DNA of 64,000 bases from Kudoa neothunni (GCA_964304625.1 OZ199839.1:8878328-8942327), one strand, 5' to 3'. Counted from the stretch's first letter, positions 44,336-64,000 are shown. Notes: a model not told the origin generated them from the letters alone. Made by a program: numbers and translations.

Positions 44336-46944
44336 AGAAATTGCTTCTTACATACAATAGATGCAGGAAATATAAATTTGAAATAAAATTCATACATAGA
44401 ATATACTTTTGGTAAATCATAAATTTATTAAAAAATACAAATATATAATATTTTAATAATGAAAGATATAATTATTCGTTAAACGATAATCAAATACGAA
44501 AAATATATAATAGGATTAATTTACCAATGAAAATATTCTTCGTTTATTTATATTGAATCAACTTCGATTCAAATGCTGCTAATATTTTCATTTTTGTTAA
44601 TTCACTACGTAGCTTTAGGTAATTTCATTTGTGAATCATTAATCAATACTTTTATAGATATAAGGCTTACGAGCTATACAAAATCTGAGAATGAAATAAC
44701 TGTGACAGGAGTAGAACCAACGGAAAGATTTAGAATAAATGTTGATACTGCTGAATGTGAAGAATTTAGTTATTTTGGAGCTGGGCTTGATTTCAACAAT
44801 TTCAAGTCAAGACAGGAGTGCAAAAACCACTGTAAGTTAAAATAAAGTATTGATTTGACTGATCAATTGTAGTGGTTGCTTCTCCCGATCAAATGCTCAA
44901 AGGTTGTAAGTACCCCTTGGAGAACCAACCGGGTAGTCTTTGCAAAAAATCAACGACGAATTTTAAAAGATTCTTTAAATATGTTCCTCAAAACATTGAT
45001 AAGTCCAACGGAACAATTACGCCAGAAGAGTACCAATGTAGAGGATTCCAGTCTAAGGGTTGCGAAGATTCCGAATATGTTTATGAAAACGAAAGAGTCT
45101 GTCAAAATGCTTGTTTAGGTTACAAAATATATTAAAGCATTACTGATAATATTATAGCAAAACGAAATGAAATCCCAAACGAATTTGATTGCATTGTTCC
45201 TCACAAATTAACTAATCCTCCTGATGGTGGAGAAATGCAGTACGACGTGAAGATAGTTTACAATAAGGACAAAAATCAGTGCCTTTATACAGCCGTAGAC
45301 ACCAATCAAGAGAGAGGGATATTTAAAAAATTTAAGGACTGTGTCAATACATGTGTAACAAAAAGTAACAAAACGATTTATCATTATCCTGATTTGTTAA
45401 AATGTCTCTAAATAGGACCAGAGGATAAAAGATGGCCATGTACTGGAGCTCCTTATCAAAGCAAATGCGAAGGTCCAGTCAATCTGAAATACTACTACAA
45501 CATAACTTCAAAGTTGTGTTTTCCTTTTTATTCCACCGAATGTAAAAAACCAGAGGGAGTGAATCAATTTGATAACGTAGAATTATGTGCTGGAAAATGT
45601 CCGGTTGGTATGTGTTTAGATTTTTTTACAAAGATGTTATAAAATGGAAATAGCTGAACAAACGTGGAGGAATGCAGTAGCGTTTTGTCACGAAAGGCCC
45701 AATGCTGGAAAGGGTTCGTTGGACCTTCCAAGATGGTACTTTGACGTTGAAACCAGAGATTGCTATTTGTTTGCTTATAAAGGCATTGGAGGAAACAAGA
45801 ATAGGTTCATAAAGAAAGAACTGTGTTTGGCATCCTGTAGTCAATCATCTTACCAATTAACGCTTTCACCTTCTCCTTTGTCAAAGGACTATTATAAATC
45901 AAATAACGGCTAAGACACCGATACAGTCATCTCTGGATATTGCATTATTGCATTATTGCGTAATTGTTAATTATAATTTATAAACCATCTTCAATCATTG
46001 AAATATATCTATGAAAAATTTATTGTTTATTTATTTAAACGTATTTATTTGTATGGATGCTTGAAGGAGGTTATTTTAATGATAATTGAATCCTCATGAA
46101 AAAATTAGTCCCAATTTTGAGGATTCTTTTTGTATTGCAAAAACGATGCTACTATAAGGTTACATATTTTTTTAGTTTTTACTGGATAATTAGTATCTTC
46201 AATAAATAAGAATTAAATATATTTAATCAATTGTTAACCTCTAAAGTTGCTATTAAAAATAAAGATGTTGTCTATAATTCTTATATTATGTACATTACAA
46301 ATTAACCAAATGGTGACTTTGAATTTGGTACTAATTATTTTTGTTTAAAAAAAATTTTACAAAAATGTCATCTGAAAATATTCGCGAAGCTTTTGTAATA
46401 GATTGAGATTAACGTTAATTTAAAAAAGTTCATCGAATTATTTTTCCTCGCATTTAATCATGAAGGGATTTATTGGCGAAAATATAGAGAAAATATTTTT
46501 CATTCTGATTAGATTCCAAACATTACGTTTATTATTAAAATAAATGAAAAAGTTAGGTTATATATCGTGACTTCTCTAATGATATCGGTTTATGTTATTA
46601 TATTTTCGCAGCTAATTCCCATATTTATAATAACGTTTGAATAAATTATATTAAAACTATTGTTATGACCAAATATTATTACCACTCAGATTAGGGTAGT
46701 TATTAGGTTGTTAATGAATCAGTTTGATATGTTGAAATATTTCTACATTAATAAATATATTATGATATTCTTATATATGAATTTAACGAGCAGTATTAGG
46801 TATTTTATATTAAAAGAGTAAAGAAAGTATTTAAAATGTTACTTTAATTCATACGTTATTGTTCCGAGTGTATTTGAGATCCATTAGATCTCAATAGATG
46901 TTTGAATCAATTTTAGAGAACCTTATAATACACCAATAAATTTA
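44336..46944 (+). repeat. Segmental duplicate, copy 1 (about 2.6 kb; partner 51462-54086)
   Basis: Base-by-base identity with copy 2 across promoter, introns and 1 kb downstream, except the 44911-45060 patch, a few substitutions and 1-nt homopolymer indels. Confidence 0.97.
44573..45913 (+). CDS. Secreted protein with five tandem Kunitz/BPTI-like domains, copy 1. Introns approx 44619-44657, 44832-44872, 45119-45157, 45365-45415, 45608-45653
   Basis: Signal peptide MLLIFSFLLIHYVAL. Kunitz signatures ECEEFSYFG...NNFKSRQEC, KYYYNITSKLCFPF...NQFDNVELCAGKC and RWYFDVETRDCYLFAYKGIGGNKNRFIKKELCLASC. One domain per phase-1 exon. Confidence 0.9.
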
Positions 46945-49900
46945 GGCTGTGGCTATTGCAACGGATCCGTTTAATCCGAATGCTCGGACTGTCTATTGCA
47001 ACGGGAGGAAATAACTCGACAGCTAACATGTCTATAAAAATTTCAACTTCTTTTTTGTAATACATGATTTTTTTGCTAAATTATTTCAAATTTTGGGGGG
47101 AAATATAATATGATGGAATATTCAAGGTGGTTATTGAAAATTAAGTAATTTCATAATGTCATTTTGATTTGATAGATCGTAGGAATACTAAAAAAGCTTT
47201 CTAAGACAATAAAATTTCATAATTGCAAAAATTTTATGTAAATCGTATGCTTTTTATAATATGAATTACCACGCTCAGGAGTCCGCGCCATTACGTAAGA
47301 CTTAGTTAACTAGTAGTGCTGGTTCTTTCGTTGGTTAACATCCCTCTGATTCGATACATGCTGTTATGGAGAATTATTAACACATTAATTAAAGATTTGT
47401 TTTCCAAAATTTATAATATGAATAATGTGTATTAATATATAATTCATTGTATTTAATGCTATGTCTCAATCTATGAAATAAACACAAATCTATGATTTCG
47501 AGTTAGATTTATTTGATACTATATATAGGACTTTAAAAATAGATTATTTGTTTAAGATATGGTAGTTTTTATGGAATAATGCGTCATTTCCTTGATTCGA
47601 TGTTACATCGCAATAATTTGAGGGTAATGGGTAATAATTCTCCACATAAAAACAAAAATTTGATTATTACAATAAAGTCAAGATCCTTTTAAGATCAATA
47701 TAAATGGCGAGCATGTAACGATTTATAGATGAAGATTAAAGTATTTTGATTGAACTAAAGATATATACTTTAGGAGAATTTTAATTATCCCCCTAAATTT
47801 TTGGGCATGTTTTCAAACAAAAATTAGCTTATATAGTAATGTGTGGTCAACAATAACTCAAATAATAGTGCGCACAGTTTTCCTTGGTTCGTTTTTCTAA
47901 TTGTTGTTGGCGTCATGGAATTTTATCTAGGAATGAAGTTTCAATCGTATGAGCAATTACAAACTCATATCGGATGTTATGAATGTTCGGAATTTTTCAG
48001 CCTGAAAATAAGAGAATCTAGGACATTAAAAAATGTAAAAAGTAAGGTCAAAAAGGTATTTAATGATGCTTTGGTTTATTATGGAATGAAATTCGTATGC
48101 ATTTTTGGAAACCTTTATAAAAAAAGGGGGACTGGAGAGAGCAAGTCAACGACGTATAAGAAAGATTGTCCGTTTAATACCGTACTCTGGGCGAGCGATG
48201 ATGGCCAATTTCTGGAAATTAAAACATTATATATAGAACACAACCATCCGTGTAACGATTCGTTGTATAAATTTTTGCCCGATTAAAGAAAAATTGACTT
48301 GTCAGATAACAATATATCTGAATTAATTGCACTTGGGGTTAATAAAAAACTTATACAAACTAAATTATGCCAGAGACCGGTAAAGTTGTGATATTAGAAT
48401 CACTGCATAACATCAACACAAAAAGATTAGCTAATATTGATGTATTGAAAGCCACAAATCTTCTAACTCAGAATTATGATTGTGATGTTAAAATTCAAAA
48501 AAACTCTGATAATGTTGTTACTGGATTGTTTTTCATCGATAAACTAATGAAAAGAGCTCTAACGTTCTACCCCAAAGTACTTCTTGTAGACGCAACATAC
48601 AAGCTTCTTCAATTCACGGTAATTTTTAATAAATATTTATCTAGTATTTAAATGAGTTCCACATATGATTTTTTAGAGCACCATTGTATTTAACTGTTGC
48701 CGTTGATTCTATTGGGGAAACGCATGTAACTTCGGCTTGTATTAATTTTTCATGATGACGAGGAATCAGTCAAATGGTACATGAACCAACTTTTGGAAAA
48801 TTGTCCTGTACTCAAGGAAAAATTGTGTACAGTTACAACAGACAGATACAAAACTTAGGAATAGTGTAAAAACAATTTTTCCAAATGCCCAACTTTTTAT
48901 CTGCATGTTTCTTGTTTTGCAAATATTTCGTAGGGAATTTTCAACATCAAAATATATTATATTATCAAAGACTCGAAATAAAATACTCCATTTGTTTAAC
49001 AAGATGATTAGGGTTAATGTTAAGGTTGAATTTGACAAACTATGCTCTGAGTTGGTCGATTTAAATAATGTCAAACTGACGGAATATTTTCAAACTCGTT
49101 GGCTGCTAATTTATAGCGAATGGATCCTTCCTCTAAGTAACGCGCAAAAAATTTATGGAAATACGACCAATGATAGATTGGAAGCTATTAATTCAAAATT
49201 AAAAAGCACTGTAAAAAGATTTTCAACATTGAGTGACTTTTTTAATAGATTCTTTACAACCATCTATTCAATGTGTATTGAACGATACAACAAAATTGTA
49301 TCATCATTGTTGAAAAGTAATCCAATAAATGATACGAATCCAGTTCAAAAATTATACTTTGAATTATTGACACCTTTCGCGTTTTAAACTTGTTAACGAA
49401 GAAATTATGTCGATGAAATGTGTTCATGATCCTATAGGGGGAGTTAATACGTGCTCCTACAACTTCAGGAAATCATATGACTTACCCTGTAGACACATTT
49501 TGTCTGCCAGAGCATTATACCTGGAAAATACATTTGAGCCCTCACTATGTGGAGAGAGGTGGACAAGAAAATATACTCTTGAATATATTCAGGAATCTAT
49601 TAACATAAATGCCTCTACAGAGGAAAACTCAAAACTCCATAAATGTGTCACAATAAATCACGGACTAAATTGAAGACATAACGCGGGCTTTAAAAATGCA
49701 CTTTTTCCATGTCAACAAACTTGCGATAATTTCTGCAAATCATTGTGGAGAATTTTATGAAAAATTTATTCTGTTGATAAAAGGATTGGAAGATATCGCA
49801 AGGAAAAAAAATAATACTAAGTTGGATGAAATTTTACATTTATGTAATATCACTTTTCCATCGTTATTTAAGTAAATTTGGTACCAAATCAGTTGGATGG

Positions 49901-51208
49901 TACTGACGAAATCCAGTTAAGTGACGTGTCCTCAAACAATCTATCTACCAGTGGTATTGCAGATAATACTAATTATTCGTTAAATGGAGATTTAGTATAT
50001 CAAATAGAAGACCGTCTTTAGAGCACTCAAATATTAATAATTGAAGGCCCCTCAGGCGAATCACAACCATTCTCAACGGATGAAAACGGTCAAAGTTTAG
50101 AAGAGATCATCTCCAATGAGCAAGAGGAAAATTGCGGAAACTTAAAAAAGTATGTAGATATTCTAGATCTAACTTATTATGATTTAATGTTATCTTTTCC
50201 ATCTAAAGTAAAGAGTGTTGAGCATCCTAGAAAAAGAAAGCAGGATAAAAAATAAAACAATTAACTATATAAATGAAACAATTAATAGATGAAAATCAAA
50301 AATTTTCCTCATGTTATTAATGCCAAAATAAATTGTTGGGTATCGTGACCAACCGTACGGTTTCTGTCAAAGAAATCATTAACAATTTCAAGGGAACCAG
50401 AGCCATCAGGCGGACCTACTCCGATTGCCAATAAGTGAGTAATGCGGTCATCCACAAAACGGTACACCTCGAACCTGGGTAAAATTCACATAAGAATACC
50501 CAGAGGTGAAGGTACACATGTTCGGCAATCGGGGTGTAGGGTCCGTCTCACAGTTGCGTTATTTTGGCCCCCTGCATAGAATCGGTTTTTAGCATCCCTC
50601 ACCACATATAACCGTTGTGTTTACTAACATTATTACTCCCTCTCTTTTTTCTGAGTTATCTTCATTTGATTTCTTTTTGCCGCGTGCACTCGAGGATACA
50701 ACATAAATTGCGATATAGTAGAGCTAATTTGTATCTTTATATAGCGATAAGATAGATCATTCAATATGTAGAAAATTAGGATCTCGAAATAAAAAGATCT
50801 AACATTTTACGCGTTATGCTAACAGCGCATTATTACTGTCTTAAGCGTTATAGCGGTGCTTCATTCATGCGCAAGTCCGGTGAATTTGCATTAGTAAATT
50901 TGGGTCTTTTAATTGAATCAACTTAGATTACTCTGAATTATGGAAAAGATAATCACGTTTATAAATTATAAATCGCTAATTAAGAACTTCACAATAATTT
51001 TTAACCTCAGAATTCATTGCCATAAAATGCGAAAATTTGGTATCTTGGATTTCTTTTATAATAGTTTAACTTTTTGGCGAAAAAATCATTTATTATAAAA
51101 TAGAAATTAAGATTTTTATAGACACGTTAGTTTTCGAGTTATTTCCTCCCGTTGCAACACACAGTCCGAACATGCGGATTAAACGGATCCGTTACAATAG
51201 ACACTGCC
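46945..51208 (+). mobile_element. Full-length decayed Mutator-like element (MULE) with a ZSWIM3-like transposase pseudogene (about 47915-49850)
   Basis: TIRs of about 105 bp (GGCTGTGGCTATTGCAACGGATCCGTTTAATCCG... / ...CGGATTAAACGGATCCGTTACAATAGACACTGCC). 9-bp TSD ATAAATTTA / ATAAATTCA. FAR1-type CPF...HNHP, VLLVDATYK, TTNDRLEAINSKLK and SWIM LPCRH motifs with in-frame stops. Confidence 0.95.
50334..50606 (+). other. GC-rich, strongly foldable island inside the MULE (unknown ncRNA, retro-element fragment or solo LTR)
   Basis: Composition jump against AT-rich flanks. Stem of about 22 bp (50408-50429 / 50524-50548), nested stem 50475-50481 / 50497-50503. Starts TGT and ends ACA, but no TSD. Confidence 0.5.
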
Positions 51209-51461
51209 ATAAATTCAACTGTTTTTACAACTTTCCATGATAAAAGAATAAATTTGATATCAAATAAAAAAATTAAATTTTAAAACAGGAAATTCATCAT
51301 GAATAATGAGTCGATCCAAAAATGTTAAGCTAAATTAGATATATTAAGCATCGATAACTCAATATAGTTAAGGTAATATACAATATTACCAATATTAGAA
51401 TAGAACTATTATAAAAGCATAAATGCTCTTTGGTCTGTATCTGAAAAAAATTAATGCCTAA

Positions 51462-54086
51462 AGAAATTGTTTCTTAAATACAATAGATGCAGGAAATATA
51501 AAATTTGAAATAAAATTCATACATAGAATATACTTTTGGTAAATCATAAATTTATTAAAAAATACAAATATATAATATTTTAATAATGAAAGATATAATT
51601 GTTCGTTAAACGATAATCAAATACGAAAAAATATATAATAGGATTAATTTACCAATGAAAATATTCTTCGTTTATTTATATTGAATCAACTTCGATTCAA
51701 ATGCTGCTAATATTTTCATTTTTGTTAATTCACTACGTAGCTTTAGGTAATTTCATTTGTGAATCATTAATCAATACTTTTATAGATATAAGGCTTACGA
51801 GCTATACAAAATCTGAGAATGAAATAACTGTGACAGGAGTAGAACCAACGGAAAGATTTAGAATAAATGTTGATACTGCTGAATGTGAAGAATTTAGTTA
51901 TTTTGGAGCTGGGCTTGATTTCAACAATTTTCAAGTCAAGACAGGAGTGCAAAAACCACTGTAAGTTAAAATAAAGTATTGATTTGACTGATCAATTGTA
52001 GTGGTTGCTTCTCCCGATCAAATGCTCAAAGGTTGTAAGCATCCCCTGGAATCTCATCCAAAAAAGTCTCTGTACGAAAACACCAACGACGTTTAAAAGA
52101 TTCTTTAAATATGTTCCTCAAAACATTAATTCTACCAACGGAACAATCACTCCAGAAAAGTACGAATGTAGAGGGTTCTCGTCAAATGGCTGCGAAAGAT
52201 TCCGAATATGTTTATGAAAACGAAAGAGTCTGTCAAAATGCTTGTTTAGGTTACAAAATATATTAAAGCATTACTGATAATATTATAGCAAAACGAAATG
52301 AAATCCCAAACGAATTTGATTGCATTGTTCCTCACAAATTAACTAATCCTCCTGATGGTGGAGAAATGCAGTACGACGTGAAGATAGTTTACAATAAGGA
52401 CAAAAATCAGTGCCTTTTATACAGCCGTAGACACCAATCAAGAGAGAGGGATATTTAAAAAATTTAAGGACTGTGTCAATACATGTGTAACAAAAAAGTA
52501 ACAAAACGATTTTATCATTATCCTGATTTGTTAAAATGTCTCTAAATAGGACCAGAGGATAAAAGATGGCCATGTACTGGAGCTCCTTATCAAAGCAAAA
52601 TGCGAAGGTCCAGTCAATCTGAAATACTACTACAACATAACTTCAAAGTTGTGTCTTCCTTTTTATTCCACCGAATGTAAAAAAACCAGAGGGAGTGAAT
52701 CAATTTGATAACGTAGAATTATGTGCTGGAAAATGTCCGGTTGGTATGTGTTTAGATTTTTTTTACAAAGATGTTATAAAATGGAAATAGCTGAACAAAC
52801 GTGGAGGAATGCAGTAGCGTTTTGTCACGAAAGGCCCAATGCTGGAAAGGGTTCGTTGGACCTTCCAAGATGGTACTTTGACGTTGAAACCAGAGATTGC
52901 TATTTGTTTGCTTTATAAAGGCATTGGGAGGAAACAAGAATAGGTTCATAAAGAAAGAACTGTGTTTGGCATCCTGTAGTCAATCATCTTACCAATTAAC
53001 GCTTTCACCTTCTCCTTTGTCAAAGGGACTATTATAAATCAAATAACGGCTAAGACACCGATACAGTCATCTCTGGATATTGCATTATTGCATTATTGCG
53101 TAATTGTTAATTATAATTTATAAACCATCTTCAATCATTGAAATATATCTATGAAAAATTTATTGTTTATTTATTTAAACGTATTTATTTGTATGGATGC
53201 TTGAAGGAGGTTATTTTAATGATAATTGAATCCTCATGAAAAAATTAGTCCCAATTTTGAGGATTCTTTTTGTATTGCAAAAACGATGCTACTATAAGGT
53301 TACATATTTTTTTAGTTTTTACTGGATAATTAGTATCTTCAATAAATAAGAATTAAATATATTTAATCAATTGTTAACCTCTAAAGTTGCTATTAAAAAT
53401 AAAGATGTTGTCTATAATTCTTATATTATGTACATTACAAATTAACCAAATGGTGACTTTGAATTTGGTACTAATTATTTTTGTTTAAAAAAAAATTTTA
53501 CAAAAATGTCATCTGAAAATATTCGCGAAGCTTTTGTAATAGATTGAGATTAACGTTAATTTAAAAAAGTTCATCGAATTATTTTTCCTCGCATTTAATC
53601 ATGAAGGGATTTATTGGCGAAAATATAGAGAAAATATTTTTCATTCTGATTAGATTCCAAACATTACGTTTATTATTAAAATAAATGAAAAAGTTAGGTT
53701 ATATATCGTGACTTCTCTAATGATATCGGTTTATGTTATTATATTTTCGCAGCTAATTCCCATATTTATAATAACGTTTGAATAAATTATATTAAAACTA
53801 TTGTTATGACCAAATATTATTACCACTCAGATTAGGGTAGTTATTAGGTTGTTAATGAATCAGTTTGATATGTTGAAATAATTTCTACATTAATAAATAT
53901 ATTATGATATTCTTATATATGAAATTTAACGAGCAGTATTAGGTATTTTATATTAAAGAGTAAAGAAAGTATTTAAAATGTTACTTTAATTCATACGTTA
54001 TTGTTCCGAGTGTATTTGAGATCCATTAGATCTCAATAGATGTTTGAATCAATTTTAGAGAACCTTATAATACATCAATAAATTTA
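51462..54086 (+). repeat. Segmental duplicate, copy 2
   Basis: Near-identical to 44336-46944; ends at ATAAATTTA, the same 9-mer that forms the left MULE TSD in copy 1. Confidence 0.97.
51701..53053 (+). CDS. Five-Kunitz-domain secreted protein, copy 2. Apparent frameshifts are all +1 homopolymer extensions, so it is probably intact
   Basis: Same exon structure as copy 1; about a dozen single-base run extensions (ttttcaag, gcgaaagat, gccttttat, gagagggg, gcaaaatg, ttgggagg) and no nonsense substitutions seen. Confidence 0.7.
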
Positions 54087-54143
54087 AGGTAATCACTATT
54101 CTTTTATTAATATGCGCTCTATTAATCTTTTAAAAGAAAATAT

Positions 54144-54684
54144 GCCTGGAGCCGAGGACAGATAGCACAATGGTGTGACACTAGGCTCAGAACCATATGA
54201 TAATGGATTCGAATCCGCCGGTAATCCGACTACTGCTTCCGTGTATGTTGGTCTCTATCCCATATTTGGGAGCTGTGGTTACAGTGTACACTAGAGCTTC
54301 TAAAAAGCGTGATGCATTTCACACCATATCGCGCGCGTGACGTGGCACGCGTAGAAACCCTAGTGTACACTCGCTGTGAGGTGGGGTGCACCAGCAACCA
54401 AATTGACGTGAATAGGAGTTAGAATCTCTGTAATCCATCGAAAGACAAGTAATTTGCAGGTCTCACGGAGCCAACGTCCGTAAAGGGATAGGGTGTGGGG
54501 TGGTGGTCGCCCTGAGACGAGGATGTTTAATGGGTTAAAGTCCCACATTACCACATAAGGATGAGGAGTGGGATTTCATTTTACGTTCTGCGGTGCCTAC
54601 AGCGTTAATGGAAGAGGTCTAACCGACCAGAATTCCACAACCTAATAAATTGCCCCAAGGGTTTTACCTTGTAAACAAAAAAAA
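54144..54684 (+). mobile_element. tRNA-derived SINE, type A (about 540 bp)
   Basis: Starts GCCTGG; A-box TAGCACAATGG and B-box GGATTCGAATCC; 3' end ...CCTTGTAAAC + A8; flanking direct repeat AAGAAAATAT (54134-54143 / 54695-54704). Confidence 0.88.
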
Positions 54685-55277
54685 TTAAAAGAACAAGAAA
54701 ATATAGAAACCCTTCCCAACTATGTTGTTGATTTCATGTTTCGAAGAAAATATATTGAAAAAGAATTATTAACTTTATTTAAATATATATTGGTTTGTAG
54801 GTAGTAGAAATTGATTTTTCCGATATTCTACGAAATGTTTCATTTCTCTCCTTTTGGTCGCACAATAACTGTAATTTAGCCCTATTTACCAATTATATAT
54901 TAAAATATTTCTTTCTTTATATTTCTAAATATAAAAGTTATTATTCAAAATTTATTTCCAACTCCATGAAAGATTAACAATCAATTTAATGATTAAATTT
55001 AATCCGACTTTTTCCAAATCAATACAATTGTATATACATAATTAAACATAAAAAATTGTAGGAACTTAATACAATAAGCTATATATTATTCATAAGAATA
55101 TATTTGAATAGGATTTCGTCTTTAAATTTAATTCTCTAAAAAATTTATATGGCTGTTCAACAATAAATCCATCATTAGCCAAACTAATTGGGGAGGGTTC
55201 ATGCCGTCAGTGGGGTCGTTTACGTAACTACTCAAGTTCGTCCTCATCAACCAAATAATACATCGGATTTTCATTAC

Positions 55278-58271
55278 ATGCTATCGTTTAAAATGATCGT
55301 TGTATGGGCTTTATTTTTGGTTAGGAAAGGTGTTTGTTCCAATGATTTTGGACAATGACCATTATTTAGGGGTTGCAAAAGAAAGGAGTCCCTTAGAGAA
55401 AAAATGTTTGAACTGTTTATTTGATGAAAAAATGACTTGGTGTCTAGATTCAGTAGATATATCTAAAAGCCTATTTATTTTAATAAGTTGCTTTTGAAGT
55501 TTATTGACAACCAATATCGTTGTGAATTTATTCCAGTATGCGCCAGTCCTCTTAAATATAACAGAACGTTGTCTGTGAGTTTATGTAGTCTATATTTTTT
55601 GAGATATTCTAGAATCTTGCTGAGGTATCACAAGAGCGAAAACTCGATTTAGGCGAACAAACTTTAGTCAATATTACTGATATGGGATCGAATACAAGTA
55701 TTTATTTGAAAACCAAAGGAAAGATTCCTTTATACATTAATGGATTGTTTAGATTTTTCCTTTACTTTTACCCGAAATGAATATGAGAGAGCAGCTGAGG
55801 TGTATTTAATGATCAATGCCAATTTTTTTAGCAGTGGTACATTGGAGTATGTTAAAAAAGTTTTGGTCCGTTTCAGTATTTTTTCAATGAAAAACTTAAA
55901 TTACTCGTTTAAATACAGTTAAATCCGAGACCACTAACCAAAACAGGCGTATTAACAAACTTGCTTTGGGTATTATTGAAAACGACCCTAATGATCTCAA
56001 CGTCGCGTACATTGATCTTTTATTTTAATTTCCCACAAACAAATTTGTATCTATTCTACCAAATAGGAATTCTTTTTTTTACCCAATTCATCCAATCTCA
56101 ACAAATTACGTAGAAATTGTAAAAAATATAAGTATTTAAAATGAACTTGAATTTAAATCGGTTTTTTAGCAAAATGTCATTTTGAAGCTTAGCAATAATT
56201 TCAGTGGTCAATCCTATAATAAACCCTTCCATGAATCAATCCTACAATCCGTCCTATGCGATCATGTAAAATGAAAAATAGTCCGACTTTCTTATAAGAA
56301 AAATGTAGCTGGAGGGGAATTGGTCAATAGAAGGGTATGAAAAATTAATTTTATTGATAACCGATATTGCCCCTTTCACAAACGTTGCTAGTTGGAATGT
56401 AAATCGTTATGGTTTCCAGATTAAATTTATTTACTCATTAAGAATCCCATATTTAACGATCAACCCTACAAATCTTGTTTGTTGACTGGTAATAAGTATA
56501 GAAACAATAATGTATATGATTAAATAAATTGATGATTGGATTATTGTGGGTTTTAGTATCCAATAGATGTGACCAAATTCGCTAAAGTTCTTCAAAAAAA
56601 CAAAGTCACTCTTGTGGTTTTTTCCAACCAGAAACAGGTCATGTACACTTTTTCTGTGAGTGTTATAAATCATGAGAATTTTCCATGATAATCCAATTCA
56701 GACTCATTTAGTAACCAATGGTGGTAGTATTATAGGAGATGTTGCATATTATCGGCGTGAATCACAATTAGAAACCTTATTAAAAGATATGTTATCTGTA
56801 TAATTAATGTTCAATCTTAAAGAAACGATAAATTTTGAATATTTTTAGAAATATCTATCCAAACTTTATATAATTGTGCCGAGCTCTGATGAATATTTTA
56901 AGATTAGCCTCAATTTGGATTGTCTGTAATTTACATCAAATAAATATAAATCCTATCGATTACATGCTAAATTTTATGGCATCAATTAGAAACTACTATG
57001 GAATCTATTACCATTGCGATCTACAAGATTTACCAAACACAAATCAATTTAATGGATTGATAGAATCGAAAAAATGTCTTCCTAGAAATTATTACATAAT
57101 GTTTTTTTAAGGATAGTATTATTTTGCTAAAATACTTTAGATACGAATACATTATTTACCGTAAACCCAATATTAAATTCACCATATTCACAGATCTCTG
57201 TTATTGTGATTGTGAGAACGATGAACAATATTCACACGTAATAATTTCGATGATAATAAATATTCTTGAATATGTTATATTTAATGCGTATTAGAAACTT
57301 GATTTCTCTTACGATGGTAATATTTTAGAATGTCAACCCCGAAGTTTGTCATTTCAGAGGGGATTATATTTGTGGAGAGTGTCGATGTTACGAAAATGAG
57401 TTTGATTTACAATTTAATTTTAATTTTTAATTTAACTAAAGATATCGAAACAATTGTTCCACATTAATTTTACCTTCAAAACCTTATCAGCCTAAAATCG
57501 GTGCCGAAAATATCCCCTCAGAATTCGACCTTGATTTTTGCTGTCGTCCGAACAAATTGGGATGTTGTCACAATAGCGCTAATACCAACCAATTTCAGTG
57601 TGGCTTCAATGATTGTAGTCGTGAAAAAGTTTTAAAGAACGCTTTGTGTCCTTTAAAACAATGTCATAATTCTTTACTGTATGAAGAGGTAATTAGAATG
57701 ACCTGTTTTCTATTGACAAGATTTTCTCAATAAATTACAAGATGGTTACTAAATGCGATGTTTGTTCAAATGATCTAAGAGAATGTGAGTTTGGTTCTGA
57801 CGAATCTGAATGTGAAAAATTTGTAAATATTATTCCGCATAGAAAAATATAATTAATGTGTATTATTCCAGTCTGAACCATTATATTGTGAAATATATGA
57901 CGAATGTCTTCAACTTAGACTACAGCCGAATATATCTCACCCGCCGCTAGACCCATTAATTGCATCTTTATGCAATTACGTAATATTTCTTAGCAATGAT
58001 GACGATTCTAAAACCAATATTCCTCCCATTACCACTTGTATGATGGCCGTCAAAATGCGTTTTATCAATTACAATGTGTTCAGCAACGAAACTCACACCT
58101 TTCTTAAAATTATTAAGATTACAACCTTAGGTAATTACAGATACGAAATTATACTTGTAAATCATATTTATAGATCCTGTATACGGTTTCCAAGTCTTTT
58201 ATTTCGTAGGTGTAATAACCCTAATATTTTTGGGTGCAATCCCAATTTATTCGTTGCTGAAGAAAAAATAA
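55278..58271 (+). CDS. Divergent integrin-beta-like membrane protein, gene 1 (many short introns)
   Basis: Signal MLSFKMIVVWALFLVRK; PSI CLNCLFDEKMTWCLD; betaI start FSFTFTRNE...EVYLMINANFFSSGTLEYVK; YCDCE; I-EGF VCHFRGDYICGECRC; Cys-rich stalk; TM VFYFVGVITLIFLGAIPIYSLL followed by KKK*. Confidence 0.8.
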
Positions 58272-61129: not shown

Positions 61130-64000
61130 ATGAATATCTTCTGACATAGTGAATTTTTAATATACCATAATCCAACATTATTAGGGTAAACTTTTGGATT
61201 ATATTTAGTCATTAAGTGATCACTGGAGAAATAGTGAATTAGGAGGTGGTAAAAACTCTAATCCGATGTTATTGTTCGAAATTTTACTATTTATATATAC
61301 TTTTTTTTCCTCCAGATGTACTGGATGTATAATTTAATATTGGTAGAGGTTTTTATTAACGAATAGATATGACTACAAGTCTTTCCGAAAATTGTACTGA
61401 GTGCTTATTGAATCAAAACAAGACTTGGTGTCTAGATGGGGTGACTATTTAAGATATTATTCATACTGTAATAAATATACTGTAAGTCGATCGAAGAACA
61501 AGAACGCTGCGGATCAAGCTCGGCCTGCATCAATCCAATGCAATATGAGAGAAATCTTGTAATTTATTCTACTCATAGAAGATTACATCGCTCTGTAGAT
61601 TATTAATAAAAGATCGCAAGTTCGAAATTTTACCCTATTCAATGGTTCGATCACCAAAACTGATTTGGGGCCCAATAAGAGTGTGTTTAGAACTAGACCA
61701 ATTATTGACAACAATATCTTTTAAATTTTAGACTTTGATTTCTCTTTTACAACTACTGGCTCAGAAAAAAAGATGGATGCTTACTTTTTGATCTATCTTA
61801 ACTTTGACAGTGCTGACAAATGGACATATATCCGTGACGGTCTGGTGAATTTCAGTATTTTATTTTTGATACTGACATACCATTTATTGTTATCAAGTTT
61901 ATCATAAGATCGCTATCGGGGATCTAAATCAAGTCGCATTAGGTACAATTCAACATTTTTCTCCCAATTCCCACATCACGTACTTTAAAAACTTCTCTAC
62001 ATACGGTTGAACGATAATTTCTCATATTTTGGTCGAAAAGAAATTCCATATATCATCATATCCATTCATTCACCGAAAATTATTACCACACCGTAATTCA
62101 ACAACAGTTATCATATTATTGTAGGTATTAATTACTACATCCTACAACAGATAAATAGCATCCGACTCCTAAACGCAACTTATAACGTTGATAATCGTGG
62201 CTATCCAATTTTTGGATCGATCCTCCAATCCATCTTGTGTGATCAGGTAACAGAAGAATTGCGTTATTTGATGATAATTAATATTAAAATATTGAACCAA
62301 AGATTGAATGGTCTAATAATGAAGACACTGCAAAATTAATATATTTTATAACAGACACAGCTCCACTTCAAATTGTATCTAAACAAACTGTATATTGCAT
62401 TTCCTCTATCAAATATAATCGTTGAATAAGATATCATTGTTTAATGGCCTAAGTTACAAACATTGCCAAATGATAAGATCCAAGTATCAGGATAATAATG
62501 TAAACTTATACATTCCTATCACAATTGATATGTCGATAATTCTCATGTATTTTAGTATCAAACAGATATAAACAGATTCGCGGGGGTTCTTCTACAGCAT
62601 GAAATTACCCTAAATATTTTCACAACACGAGCCGAATTCCACAACATCATAACTGTAATTGTTAACTTCTATGTATACCTTTATTAGACAACAAAATATA
62701 GCCTCACTTTTTAAAATATGGTGGTCAAATAATTGGAGACGTTAGAACTTTTTATAACAGATGGACGTTTACCTCACTTTTAAGACACCATTTTCAGGTA
62801 ATTTAGAAGTAATTAATGTGGTTTGTATAAAATTGGACCATAGACCGATCTAATCTCCTACTATATAATTATTCCTCCGTCAGATGATTTTTTCAACGTT
62901 TCAACAAAACTCGGATGCAGGTATCTGTACATAATTAATCAACAGATATTTTTATCGACGCACTCAAATTTGTTTATTTATAGAAGTTATGGTCAAATCT
63001 ATTTTGCCTGTCGTCGTAATATTTACCAGATTCATGTAAGTATTACAACAAAAAAATGCTTACCCAAAAATATTTCAAGAAAGTATTCCATATCTAGTCC
63101 CAGCCGCTCCATTTTAAGTCATGTAGATATGAATTTATTATCCACAGTAGACCTAATTTTGTTGCGACGTTTTACACAGATCTATGTTATTGCGATTGTG
63201 AAAAAGACACCTACGGGTCTTATGTAATTATCTCTCTATTAAATACACAAATATTTATATATTCGGCTGAATTTTATCGTAAAAAATCCTTTAACTACTT
63301 TTTTCATCTTTGATATTAATTATAATTGTAGGAAAAGAAAAGCGAAATATGTGGTTTCAGAGGTGACATCGTTTGTGGAGTGTGTAGATGTTACGATAAA
63401 CAACCGTACAATTCCACTATTTATATTCTCAACATTTATATTGTGAAGATCGCACAACAATTGCTCCACATTAGCGTTATCACCTAAGGATCATTCTGAA
63501 TCTAAAATTAACGAAGATAGCAGTTCATCCAAATATCAACAGAATTACTGCTGTACGCCAAATAAATTTGGGTGTTGTCACAGTAAAAGGAAACCAAACG
63601 AAATTCCATGTGGTTTCAATGACTGTCATAATTATACGGTTTTGAAAAAGTCCTTAACGAATCCTGAAAAATGTTTAACTTCACTTGATAAGAATGTAAT
63701 TATTTGTTAACTTTGAAAAATTGTTAATCTTCTGACATAAAGACCCAAAATAAAACTATTGTTTGCCCCCCTGGTTTCAAGAAATGTGAATTTGGTTTCG
63801 AAGGAATTTATTGTGACAAACTCGTATTTATTCATTTTTTTTGAAAATGATGTAACTTATTTTAATCCTAGTCTCAAAAATTGTATTGTGATACTTATGA
63901 TGTATGTCTTCAGTTTCTGTTACAACTCGATATCGGGGACCTCAAGCTGGAACCAGAGATGGAGAATTTCTGTGGCCGTATCATTTTGAAGGAGAATGAT
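61130..64000 (+). CDS. Divergent integrin-beta-like gene 2, paralog of gene 1. 5' end unresolved; runs off the window
   Basis: CTECLLNQNKTWCLDG; FDFSFTTTGSEKKMDAYFLIYLNFDSADKWTYIR; ICGFRGDIVCGVCRC; YCCTPNKFGCCHS...PCGFNDC, matching FCCRPNKLGCCHN...QCGFNDC of gene 1. Confidence 0.78.

Follow-up and report, generated by a model that had tools for sequence, protein, structure and literature searches.

The analysed window comprises 64,000 nucleotides (nt) of the genome of Kudoa neothunni (GCA_964304625.1), a myxozoan fish-muscle parasite, and corresponds to positions 8,878,328-8,942,327 of scaffold C2 (OZ199839.1) in a 40,260,978-base assembly of four sequences. Coordinates given below without a scaffold name are counted from the first letter of this window. 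A self-BLAST of the window revealed a direct repeat of two blocks, block A (44336-46944) and block B (51462-54086), which both lie on the plus strand and are 97.8% identical over 2630 aligned columns. The two blocks carry the same gene, which encodes a predicted secreted protein with five Kunitz-type domains (penta-Kunitz). Block A was defined by self-BLAST and base-by-base comparison as an intact copy of this gene with 237 nt of 5' flank and approximately 1 kb of 3' flank, and its start coincides with the point at which homology to two further paralogs, termed C and L003, also begins. In block B, every exon of the gene is broken by one-base insertions. Nearly all substitutions that separate the two blocks were found in one short patch of exon 2, which encodes Cys I to Cys IV of the second domain and is far older in its divergence than the sequence around it.

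Gene A encodes a signal peptide and five domains in five exons, one domain per exon, and is interrupted by four introns of 39-51 nt, all of which are in phase 1. Exon 1 (44573-44831) contains the signal peptide and domain 1 and ends in phase 1 at a GTAAGT donor. It is followed by exon 2 (44873-45118), which encodes a linker and domain 2, a divergent Kunitz-like domain whose Pfam match is below threshold, and by exon 3 (45158-45364), whose domain 3 has four cysteines and no Pfam match. The donor of exon 3 was placed at 45365 so that the following intron is in phase 1 like the other three. Domain 4 is encoded by exon 4 (45416-45607), and exon 5 (45654-45913) contains domain 5, a tail and the stop codon (45911-45913). 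The domains 1, 4 and 5 exceed the Pfam threshold for Kunitz_BPTI with 35.9, 25.9 and 58 bits, respectively. Two in-frame acceptors are present for intron 1 (44832-44903), which would be 41 nt long or, if the acceptor at 44903 is used, 71 nt long. The shorter intron would place a leucine at the position of Cys VI of domain 1 and add a 10-residue linker, and the longer intron would retain this Cys VI and make it the neighbour of Cys I of domain 2. The 30-nt segment that separates the acceptors shows 90-100% conservation across A, B, C and L003.

In a base-by-base alignment of the two blocks, a 159-nt segment of exon 2 accounted for 33 substitutions, and only five were located elsewhere (44344, 44351, 44474, 45520 and 46933), three of them within 16 nt of the block ends. 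The probability that at least 33 of 38 substitutions fall by chance into 159 of 2609 nt is 3e-35. The patch itself (44911-45060 in A and 52040-52190 in B, both on the plus strand) is 76% identical between the copies, spans Cys I to Cys IV of domain 2 and accounts for 15 amino-acid differences. Location, extent and number of amino-acid changes had been proposed in an earlier reading made from the sequence alone (termed here the sequence-only reading), and all three were recovered in the alignment. The only coding substitution outside of the patch is found at 45520 in exon 4 and yields a phenylalanine in A and a leucine in B. The two copies are not, as had been described, practically identical apart from a handful of substitutions: 17 one-base insertions in B outside of the patch had been overlooked, and the B peptide that had been quoted for the patch can be read only if one base is skipped.

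Synonymous and nonsynonymous changes were counted by the method of Nei and Gojobori, excluding the codon at the break within the B patch. Over the 52 codons of the patch, A and B differ by 15 synonymous and 18 nonsynonymous changes, which corresponds to a proportion of synonymous differences (pS) of 0.47, a synonymous divergence (dS) of 0.75, a nonsynonymous divergence (dN) of 0.16 and a dN/dS ratio (omega) of 0.21. In the rest of the coding sequence, approximately 310 codons, no synonymous and only one nonsynonymous difference were detected (dS 0). The divergence of the patch is old, as the sequence-only reading had supposed, and this age differs sharply from that of the surrounding gene. Within the patch, synonymous change is saturated in the N-terminal half, which extends from Cys I to the phenylalanine before the KRFFKY motif (pS 0.79), and the C-terminal half shows a dS of 0.35. 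A comparison of A with the paralog L003 gave a dS of 0.30 outside and 0.89 inside the patch, and the omega values obtained for the patch between A and the other paralogs ranged from 0.16 to 0.41.

Five further relatives of the gene were identified in the genome, namely L003, L004, L005, L006 and the partial inverted copy C. The domain-2 type described here was found only in these seven genes, all of which are located on C2. In each of the 21 pairs that the seven genes can form, divergence is highest in the segment between Cys I and Cys II. The pair L005 and L006 may serve as an example: the two are 72% identical in the Cys I-II segment compared with 88-97% in other segments of the gene, and their 3' flanks are 68% identical. 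For the N-terminal half of the patch, pS values of 0.37-1.5 were obtained in pairwise comparisons. None of the 15 amino-acid differences between A and B affects a column that is invariant in an alignment of five paralogs, one of which is A. The hypervariability of this region is therefore a property of the whole subfamily, and the recurrence of a variable region within a family, together with raised synonymous change in it, is the pattern that Ohta described for such families.

The partial copy C (G000:C2:8942328-8943473; also recorded as L007, L018 and L033) is inverted and lies just past window position 64000. The end of the window coincides with a 200-N scaffold gap, which truncates C inside of its patch; the remainder of C and any further copies would be hidden in this gap. 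Up to the truncation, the patch of A is 100% identical to C over 78 nt (44962-45039). Exon 1 of the two genes is only 80% identical, with a dS of 0.45, and the expected number of identical runs of at least 78 nt is 2e-4. The N-terminal half of the patch shows only 77% identity between A and C. For part of the patch, these values bear out the proposal of the sequence-only reading that sequence was exchanged with a third paralog. In exon 1, C is closer to L003 (92% identity) than A is (80%). At the variable sites of A and B, C sides with A at 20 of the 30 that could be scored, and the more distant paralogs share the state of B somewhat more often than that of A. The B patch is unique in the genome, its C-terminal half being nearest to L003 and C (dS 0.20). 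The genome search for patch donors that had been suggested earlier yielded no donor for the patch of B in the assembly, and no donor for the N-terminal half of the A patch was found there, C being cut by the 200-N gap. A search for an 'empty site', in which the sequence upstream of C was compared with the 3' end of A, returned AT-rich noise only.

A second discontinuity was found at the left side of block B. The left flank of B (51216-51461, 246 nt, plus strand) has only two copies in the genome, and the other copy is located upstream of C. The two flanks are 98% identical and differ by three one-base insertions in B and two substitutions, whereas the genes of B and C are only 84-86% identical. 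The body of B, in turn, is 99.8% identical to A. The switch is abrupt: B is C-like at 51470 and A-like from 51478 onwards, which places the change a few bases inside the homology that is shared by the family. B is a mosaic, as two marks of a gene-conversion mosaic, abrupt changes in divergence and different nearest relatives for different segments, are present.

As the interpretation of the patch depends on the nature of domain 2, this domain was analyzed separately, with protein searches run exon by exon. Domain 2 is part of a protein in which three other domains (1, 4 and 5) exceed the Kunitz threshold. In a first Pfam scan, no match of domain 2 was obtained at an E-value of 0.01. Domain 2 of A, for which individual Pfam scores were recorded, matched Kunitz_BPTI (PF00014) with 16 bits against a gathering cut-off of 21 (E-value 0.014), covering profile positions 23-52 only. 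Among the five paralogs tested, domain 2 matched Kunitz_BPTI alone, with 0.014 as the best E-value. The six cysteines of the domain are invariant in these five paralogs. Judged against the reference Kunitz spacing of C-x8-C-x15-C-x7-C-x12-C-x3-C, the distances between Cys III and IV (7), IV and V (12) and V and VI (3) are canonical. The distances between Cys I and II (11 instead of 8) and Cys II and III (31 instead of 15) are not, and it is this half of the domain that bears the patch. An AlphaFold2 model that was built from an alignment of five sequences is uncertain, with a mean predicted local distance difference test score (pLDDT) of 60, and contains a long hairpin (residues 19-50) and a helix (residues 63-69). 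A Foldseek comparison of this model with the PDB found no structure at an E-value of 0.001 or below, and several of the weak rows were Kunitz domains. A profile search of PDB sequences with domain 2 detected only the tri-Kunitz protein SmCI, with a weak E-value of 0.1. No relative of domain 2 was found by exhaustive search of 1.84 billion representative proteins; the single match, an ankyrin-repeat protein, was rejected as a repeat-driven chance match. A word-indexed protein search with the open stretch of A exon 2 produced no candidate. Cysteine pattern and profile matches taken together, domain 2 is best described as a divergent, lineage-specific Kunitz-like domain.

The residue that follows Cys II is lysine in A and threonine in B, and across the seven genes it reads K, T, E, K, T, S and N. 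The sequence-only reading had presented this difference as a change of the P1 residue from lysine to threonine. The exchange itself is present, but the label 'P1' is assigned by position only because domain 2 is below the Pfam Kunitz threshold, and the change is thus to be regarded as a positional analogy and not as a finding.

The two copies are separated by a Mutator-like element (MULE; 46945-51208, plus strand) of 4.26 kb. Its terminal inverted repeats (TIRs) are about 140 nt long (143 nt, 85% matched), and it is flanked by a target duplication of 9 base pairs (bp), ATAAATTTA (46936-46944) and ATAAATTCA (51209-51217), in which eight of nine bases match. The open reading frames (ORFs) of the element matched ZSWIM3_N/FAR1 (56.5 bits) and the RNaseH-like domain of ZSWIM1-3 (30.4 bits). 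Long TIRs, a target duplication in the range of 9-11 bp and a MULE/FAR1-type transposase, the features that define this class of elements, are hence all found in the spacer. The frame is split over several ORFs, and the element may be inactive or contain introns. More than 100 fragments of this family were detected in the genome, including at least three long copies at 91-93% identity. The identity between A and B ends at the target site of the element, which is also where, across the element, the homology between the flanks of B and C begins. A simple tandem duplication followed by insertion of the element was considered and rejected, as the segment 51216-51461 has no match downstream of B. 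Two further repeats are present at or near the block ends. One is a short dispersed repeat, to which the last approximately 80 nt of the block (46862-46944 in A and 54004-54086 in B) belong; more than 30 copies of it, with identities of about 80%, are spread over all three chromosomes. Directly downstream of B, a high-copy repeat (54146-54736) reaches a summed contig depth of 250-1300 compared with 4-8 in the unique flank, and it falls in the stretch in which the poorly assembled zone ends. The many internal joints of the read contigs at 54146-54736 suggest a tandem or nested repeat.

The K. neothunni assembly was obtained from HiFi reads of infected yellowfin tuna, comprises 40.2 Mb in three chromosome scaffolds and a circular mitochondrion, and was generated with hifiasm-meta and YaHS at a k-mer coverage of 'around seven' (PMC12239612). 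A (TAAACC)n telomere was published for one chromosome end only (PMC12239612), and (TAAACC)n was found here at a single place in the genome, the end of C2 (C2:12039536-12040069). The individual differences between B and A were compared with read contigs. Outside of the patch, B carries one deletion and 17 one-base insertions relative to A, located at 51500, 51626, 51928, 52195, 52415, 52492, 52510, 52597, 52679, 52757, 52912, 52926, 53025, 53487, 53880, 53922 and 54086. Each of these 17 adds one base to a run of one to eight identical bases, and 10 of them are exonic. A further insertion is found in an A-run within the patch (near 52061) and three more are located in the left flank. The B locus therefore contains 21 insertions and one deletion versus about seven substitutions, and in each case the insertion extends a run by a single base. 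As assembled, all five exons of B are out of frame, and B was not translated across its breaks but compared with A piece by piece.

Four runs, all of a single 2021 sample, make up the source data, and for two of them (X1 and X2) the Logan contigs were compared with the assembly over 50600-56500. Logan drops words that were seen only once and pops bubbles, so that the absence of a sequence from its contigs is weak evidence. The insertions of B were absent from the contigs of X1 and X2 at every listed site (51626, 52415, 52492, 52510, 52597, 52679, 52757, 52912/13, 52926/29, 53025 and 53487), and each listed contig shows as many gaps as there are B insertions in its span. Beyond the downstream end of B, in the unique flank, contigs and assembly are in agreement, with no gap in 1.3 kb and two gaps in 1.6 kb. 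Both alleles of the true substitutions of the block are present in the sample; at the single-nucleotide polymorphism at 51601, for instance, X1 reads the B letter (G) and X2 reads the A letter (A). One X2 contig (record 12) ends at 52654, just short of the substitution that distinguishes A and B at 52655. Because the read contigs of both runs are free of every listed insertion, the insertions are assembly errors, and the frameshifts of B are consensus errors of a HiFi assembly at approximately 7x and not signs of gene decay. As a practical warning, one-base insertions that were left uncorrected in near-identical paralogs of this assembly give the appearance of pseudogenes or recoding sites.

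An X1 contig of 256 nt (record 1) covers exactly 51217-51475 with C-type letters and ends at both points at which B and C diverge, which implies that both the B and the C context are present in the reads. Within the 5' flank, contigs of X1 match only a piece of 87 nt (51497-51583) and leave on both sides into sequence that is absent from the window and the fetched paralogs; this piece may belong to a further unassembled context or be a small shared promoter element. Five loose ends of read contigs (51073, 51157, 51497, 51583 and 53158) had no match in the window or the fetched loci. Two raw-read runs deposited under the same species label (X9, DNA; X10, RNA) contained no parasite reads and were host-derived.

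The explanation that is favored here, with confidence somewhat above even, is that non-allelic gene conversion homogenises these genes but not their hypervariable loop region, and that B is a mosaic produced in this way. A and B would be members of a lineage-specific subfamily of seven genes for secreted, five-domain Kunitz-type proteins with one phase-1 exon per domain. A very recent event of non-allelic recombination or gene conversion would have rendered the two loci identical over 2.6 kb, between the 5' edge of the family homology and the site of the Mutator-like element. The 150-nt stretch from Cys I to Cys IV would have escaped this homogenisation and retained a divergence as old as, or older than, the subfamily. 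More generally, long tracts may keep frameworks, introns and flanks alike while the loop segment is either passed over or exchanged by itself in short tracts, and such short tracts would also move between paralogs, as suggested by the 78 identical bases of A and C. The outcome would be near-identical genes that differ in the putative protease-contact loops of one domain. The C-like left flank of B and the switch inside the shared homology argue that the B locus existed before the event. Two tracts that each ended at the patch would give the same picture. The sequence-only reading had proposed that conversion homogenises the copies while selection protects the patch. The age contrast and the mosaic agree with the first half of this proposal, but selection is not needed for the second, because a mismatch of 24-35% suffices to stop heteroduplex extension and the patch could be skipped for this reason alone. 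Selection for different loop specificities is plausible, and the variation may be useful to the parasite.

Several observations weigh against this explanation. The dN/dS comparison between the copies, which had been recommended as a check, gave no ratio above 1 in the patch and with an omega of 0.21 no direct sign of positive selection. The patch of B is not C-like even though its flank is, so that more than one event is needed. The identity of A and B extends 470 nt beyond the end of the L003 homology, which a block duplication would explain equally well. If the 2.6-kb block had recently undergone segmental duplication and one copy had then acquired the whole patch from a paralog that was lost or is hidden in the gap, this sharply ended identity would be accounted for. 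Such a history would also be compatible with the grouping of the A patch with C, both in the scorable variable sites and in the 78 identical bases, and the gap beside C could conceal more copies. We regard this course of events as improbable, as a full donor was found for neither patch, the N-terminal half of the A patch resembles C only to 77%, and the left junction of B argues that its locus predates the event.

The remaining counterevidence concerns the status of B itself. No contig with a B-type patch was found in X1 or X2; at 52040-52052, X2 has an A-type contig only and X1 has no contig. This bounds the B patch to approximately one read in each run, compared with an expectation of 4-8 reads if the locus were fixed and single-copy. 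The depth of the block relative to the unique flank is about 2-3x in X1 and 1-1.4x in X2, the latter value being close to single copy. Errors are about six times as dense in B as in the unique flank beside it, which indicates that the consensus of B rests on very few reads, and the 21 uncorrected one-base insertions across 51266-54086, compared with 0-2 per 1.3-1.6 kb of unique flank, would fit a single uncorrected HiFi read. The coverage of approximately 7x was published for an assembly in which the parasite stage is diploid and residual haplotypic variation and duplication were purged only in part (PMC12239612), and a contig break with the 200-N gap lies inside the patch of C, 10 kb away. 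That two twin genes are present on one chromosome is accordingly uncertain. Because no B-type patch was seen in the two read sets, B may be a rare or one-haplotype form. Put more strongly, B would not be a fixed second gene but either a recombinant molecule that is rare or confined to one haplotype, or the product of mis-threading in a meta-assembly of very low coverage. The arrangement of twin genes on one chromosome would in that case be artefactual, with the B patch still derived from a real molecule. This is a serious possibility, which we nonetheless consider unlikely. The flanks of B differ from those of A on both sides, and B is not a simple allele of A. The junctions between flank and body and between body and patch need a single long molecule, and no identical stretch is present there that could mislead an overlap assembler. 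The X1 flank contig with its ends at both B/C divergence points implies two contexts with at least two reads each. The contig of C was also examined as an unpurged haplotig of the region and rejected, since the 10 kb past the gap share only the flank and the gene with the window. It is least credible, to the point of being nearly dismissed, that B is a true pseudogene with accumulated frameshifts. All of its exons are out of frame as assembled, but a surplus of run-lengthening insertions over substitutions, none of the listed ones backed by a read contig of either run although both alleles of the substitutions appear, does not resemble decay, and the B patch retains all of its cysteines and has no stop codon.

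The gene-conversion explanation can be extended to a cassette-like diversification, in which ancient Cys I-Cys IV loop cassettes would be reshuffled time and again among homogenised penta-Kunitz paralogs by conversion tracts of 50-150 nt. We hold this extension to be doubtful. If it were true, the parasite population would hold many combinations of loop specificities on constant frameworks, and a family of secreted inhibitors in a parasitic cnidarian would resemble antigen-receptor or variant-surface-gene systems in its function.

Comparable diversification among close paralogs is seen in the Kunitz multigene families of ticks and snake venoms. Hypervariable reactive centres in families of serine-protease inhibitors were described by Hill and Hastie in 1987 and by Ohta in 1994 (reviewed in PMC3966226), and the model of Ohta, which combines conversion and selection, predicts raised synonymous and nonsynonymous divergence in the reactive centre (PMC3966226). 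The genes described here share with these families that framework, introns and flanks are conserved or homogenised, and that a short stretch at the loop presumed to contact the enzyme is hypervariable and raised in both synonymous and nonsynonymous divergence, a pattern that was explained there by non-allelic conversion and selection (PMC3966226). They differ in that the published families comprise vertebrate and insect serpins and Kazal/ovomucoid inhibitors, whereas a Kunitz-like, putative inhibitor of a myxozoan is concerned here, with loops that are 3 and 16 residues longer than the canonical ones and a dN/dS below 1. The pair A and B is a new and very clean instance of the known reactive-centre pattern in a new lineage and not a new kind of system.

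In Echinococcus granulosus, the secreted Kunitz proteins EgKU-1 to -8 form pairs of paralogs that differ at P1 and nearby loop residues, and their signal peptides are more conserved than their domains, which was read as diversification against host proteases (PMC2740865). Unlike the five-domain genes A and B, which are identical outside of a 150-nt patch and show mosaic exchange, the EgKU proteins have a single domain and are 71-82% identical overall within the pairs. An island of selection against conversion in young duplicates was modelled by Innan for exon 7 of RHD/RHCE (cited in PMC3966226). There, too, fixed differences are clustered in a single short segment, and conversion maintains the similarity of the remaining sequence; the RHD/RHCE case is, however, supported by population-level evidence, whereas one low-coverage assembly is available here and the island is far older than its surroundings. 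In myxozoans, Kunitz 'toxin-like proteins' are one of the few toxin-like families that were kept by nearly all species (PMC9144971; PMC8083181). Multi-domain forms were reported, as well as overall purifying selection with an omega of 0.058 and one site under episodic selection (PMC9144971). These surveys were based on transcriptomes and describe mostly three-domain proteins; neither a genome-wide expansion nor conversion mosaics were reported in them.

A six-frame scan of the K. neothunni genome with the Pfam Kunitz_BPTI profile yielded 950 candidate domains, and all 150 that were scored passed the cut-off. For a genome of 40 Mb, approximately 950 candidates represent a very large Kunitz repertoire, and the assembly paper (PMC12239612) makes no mention of it. 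A run of more than 25 tandem Kunitz domains is located at C1:14950483-14956649. The larger penta-Kunitz family may deserve more attention than the pair A and B. If both copies are real, they would form an unusually clean natural pair that is identical over 2.6 kb save for the presumed target-contact loops of one domain, and they would provide direct evidence for the exchange of loop segments between paralogs. The pair would then offer concrete domain variants for testing against proteases of the host (tuna) and of the parasite, and it would place an apparently undescribed penta-Kunitz expansion of Kudoa within classical reactive-centre hypervariability.

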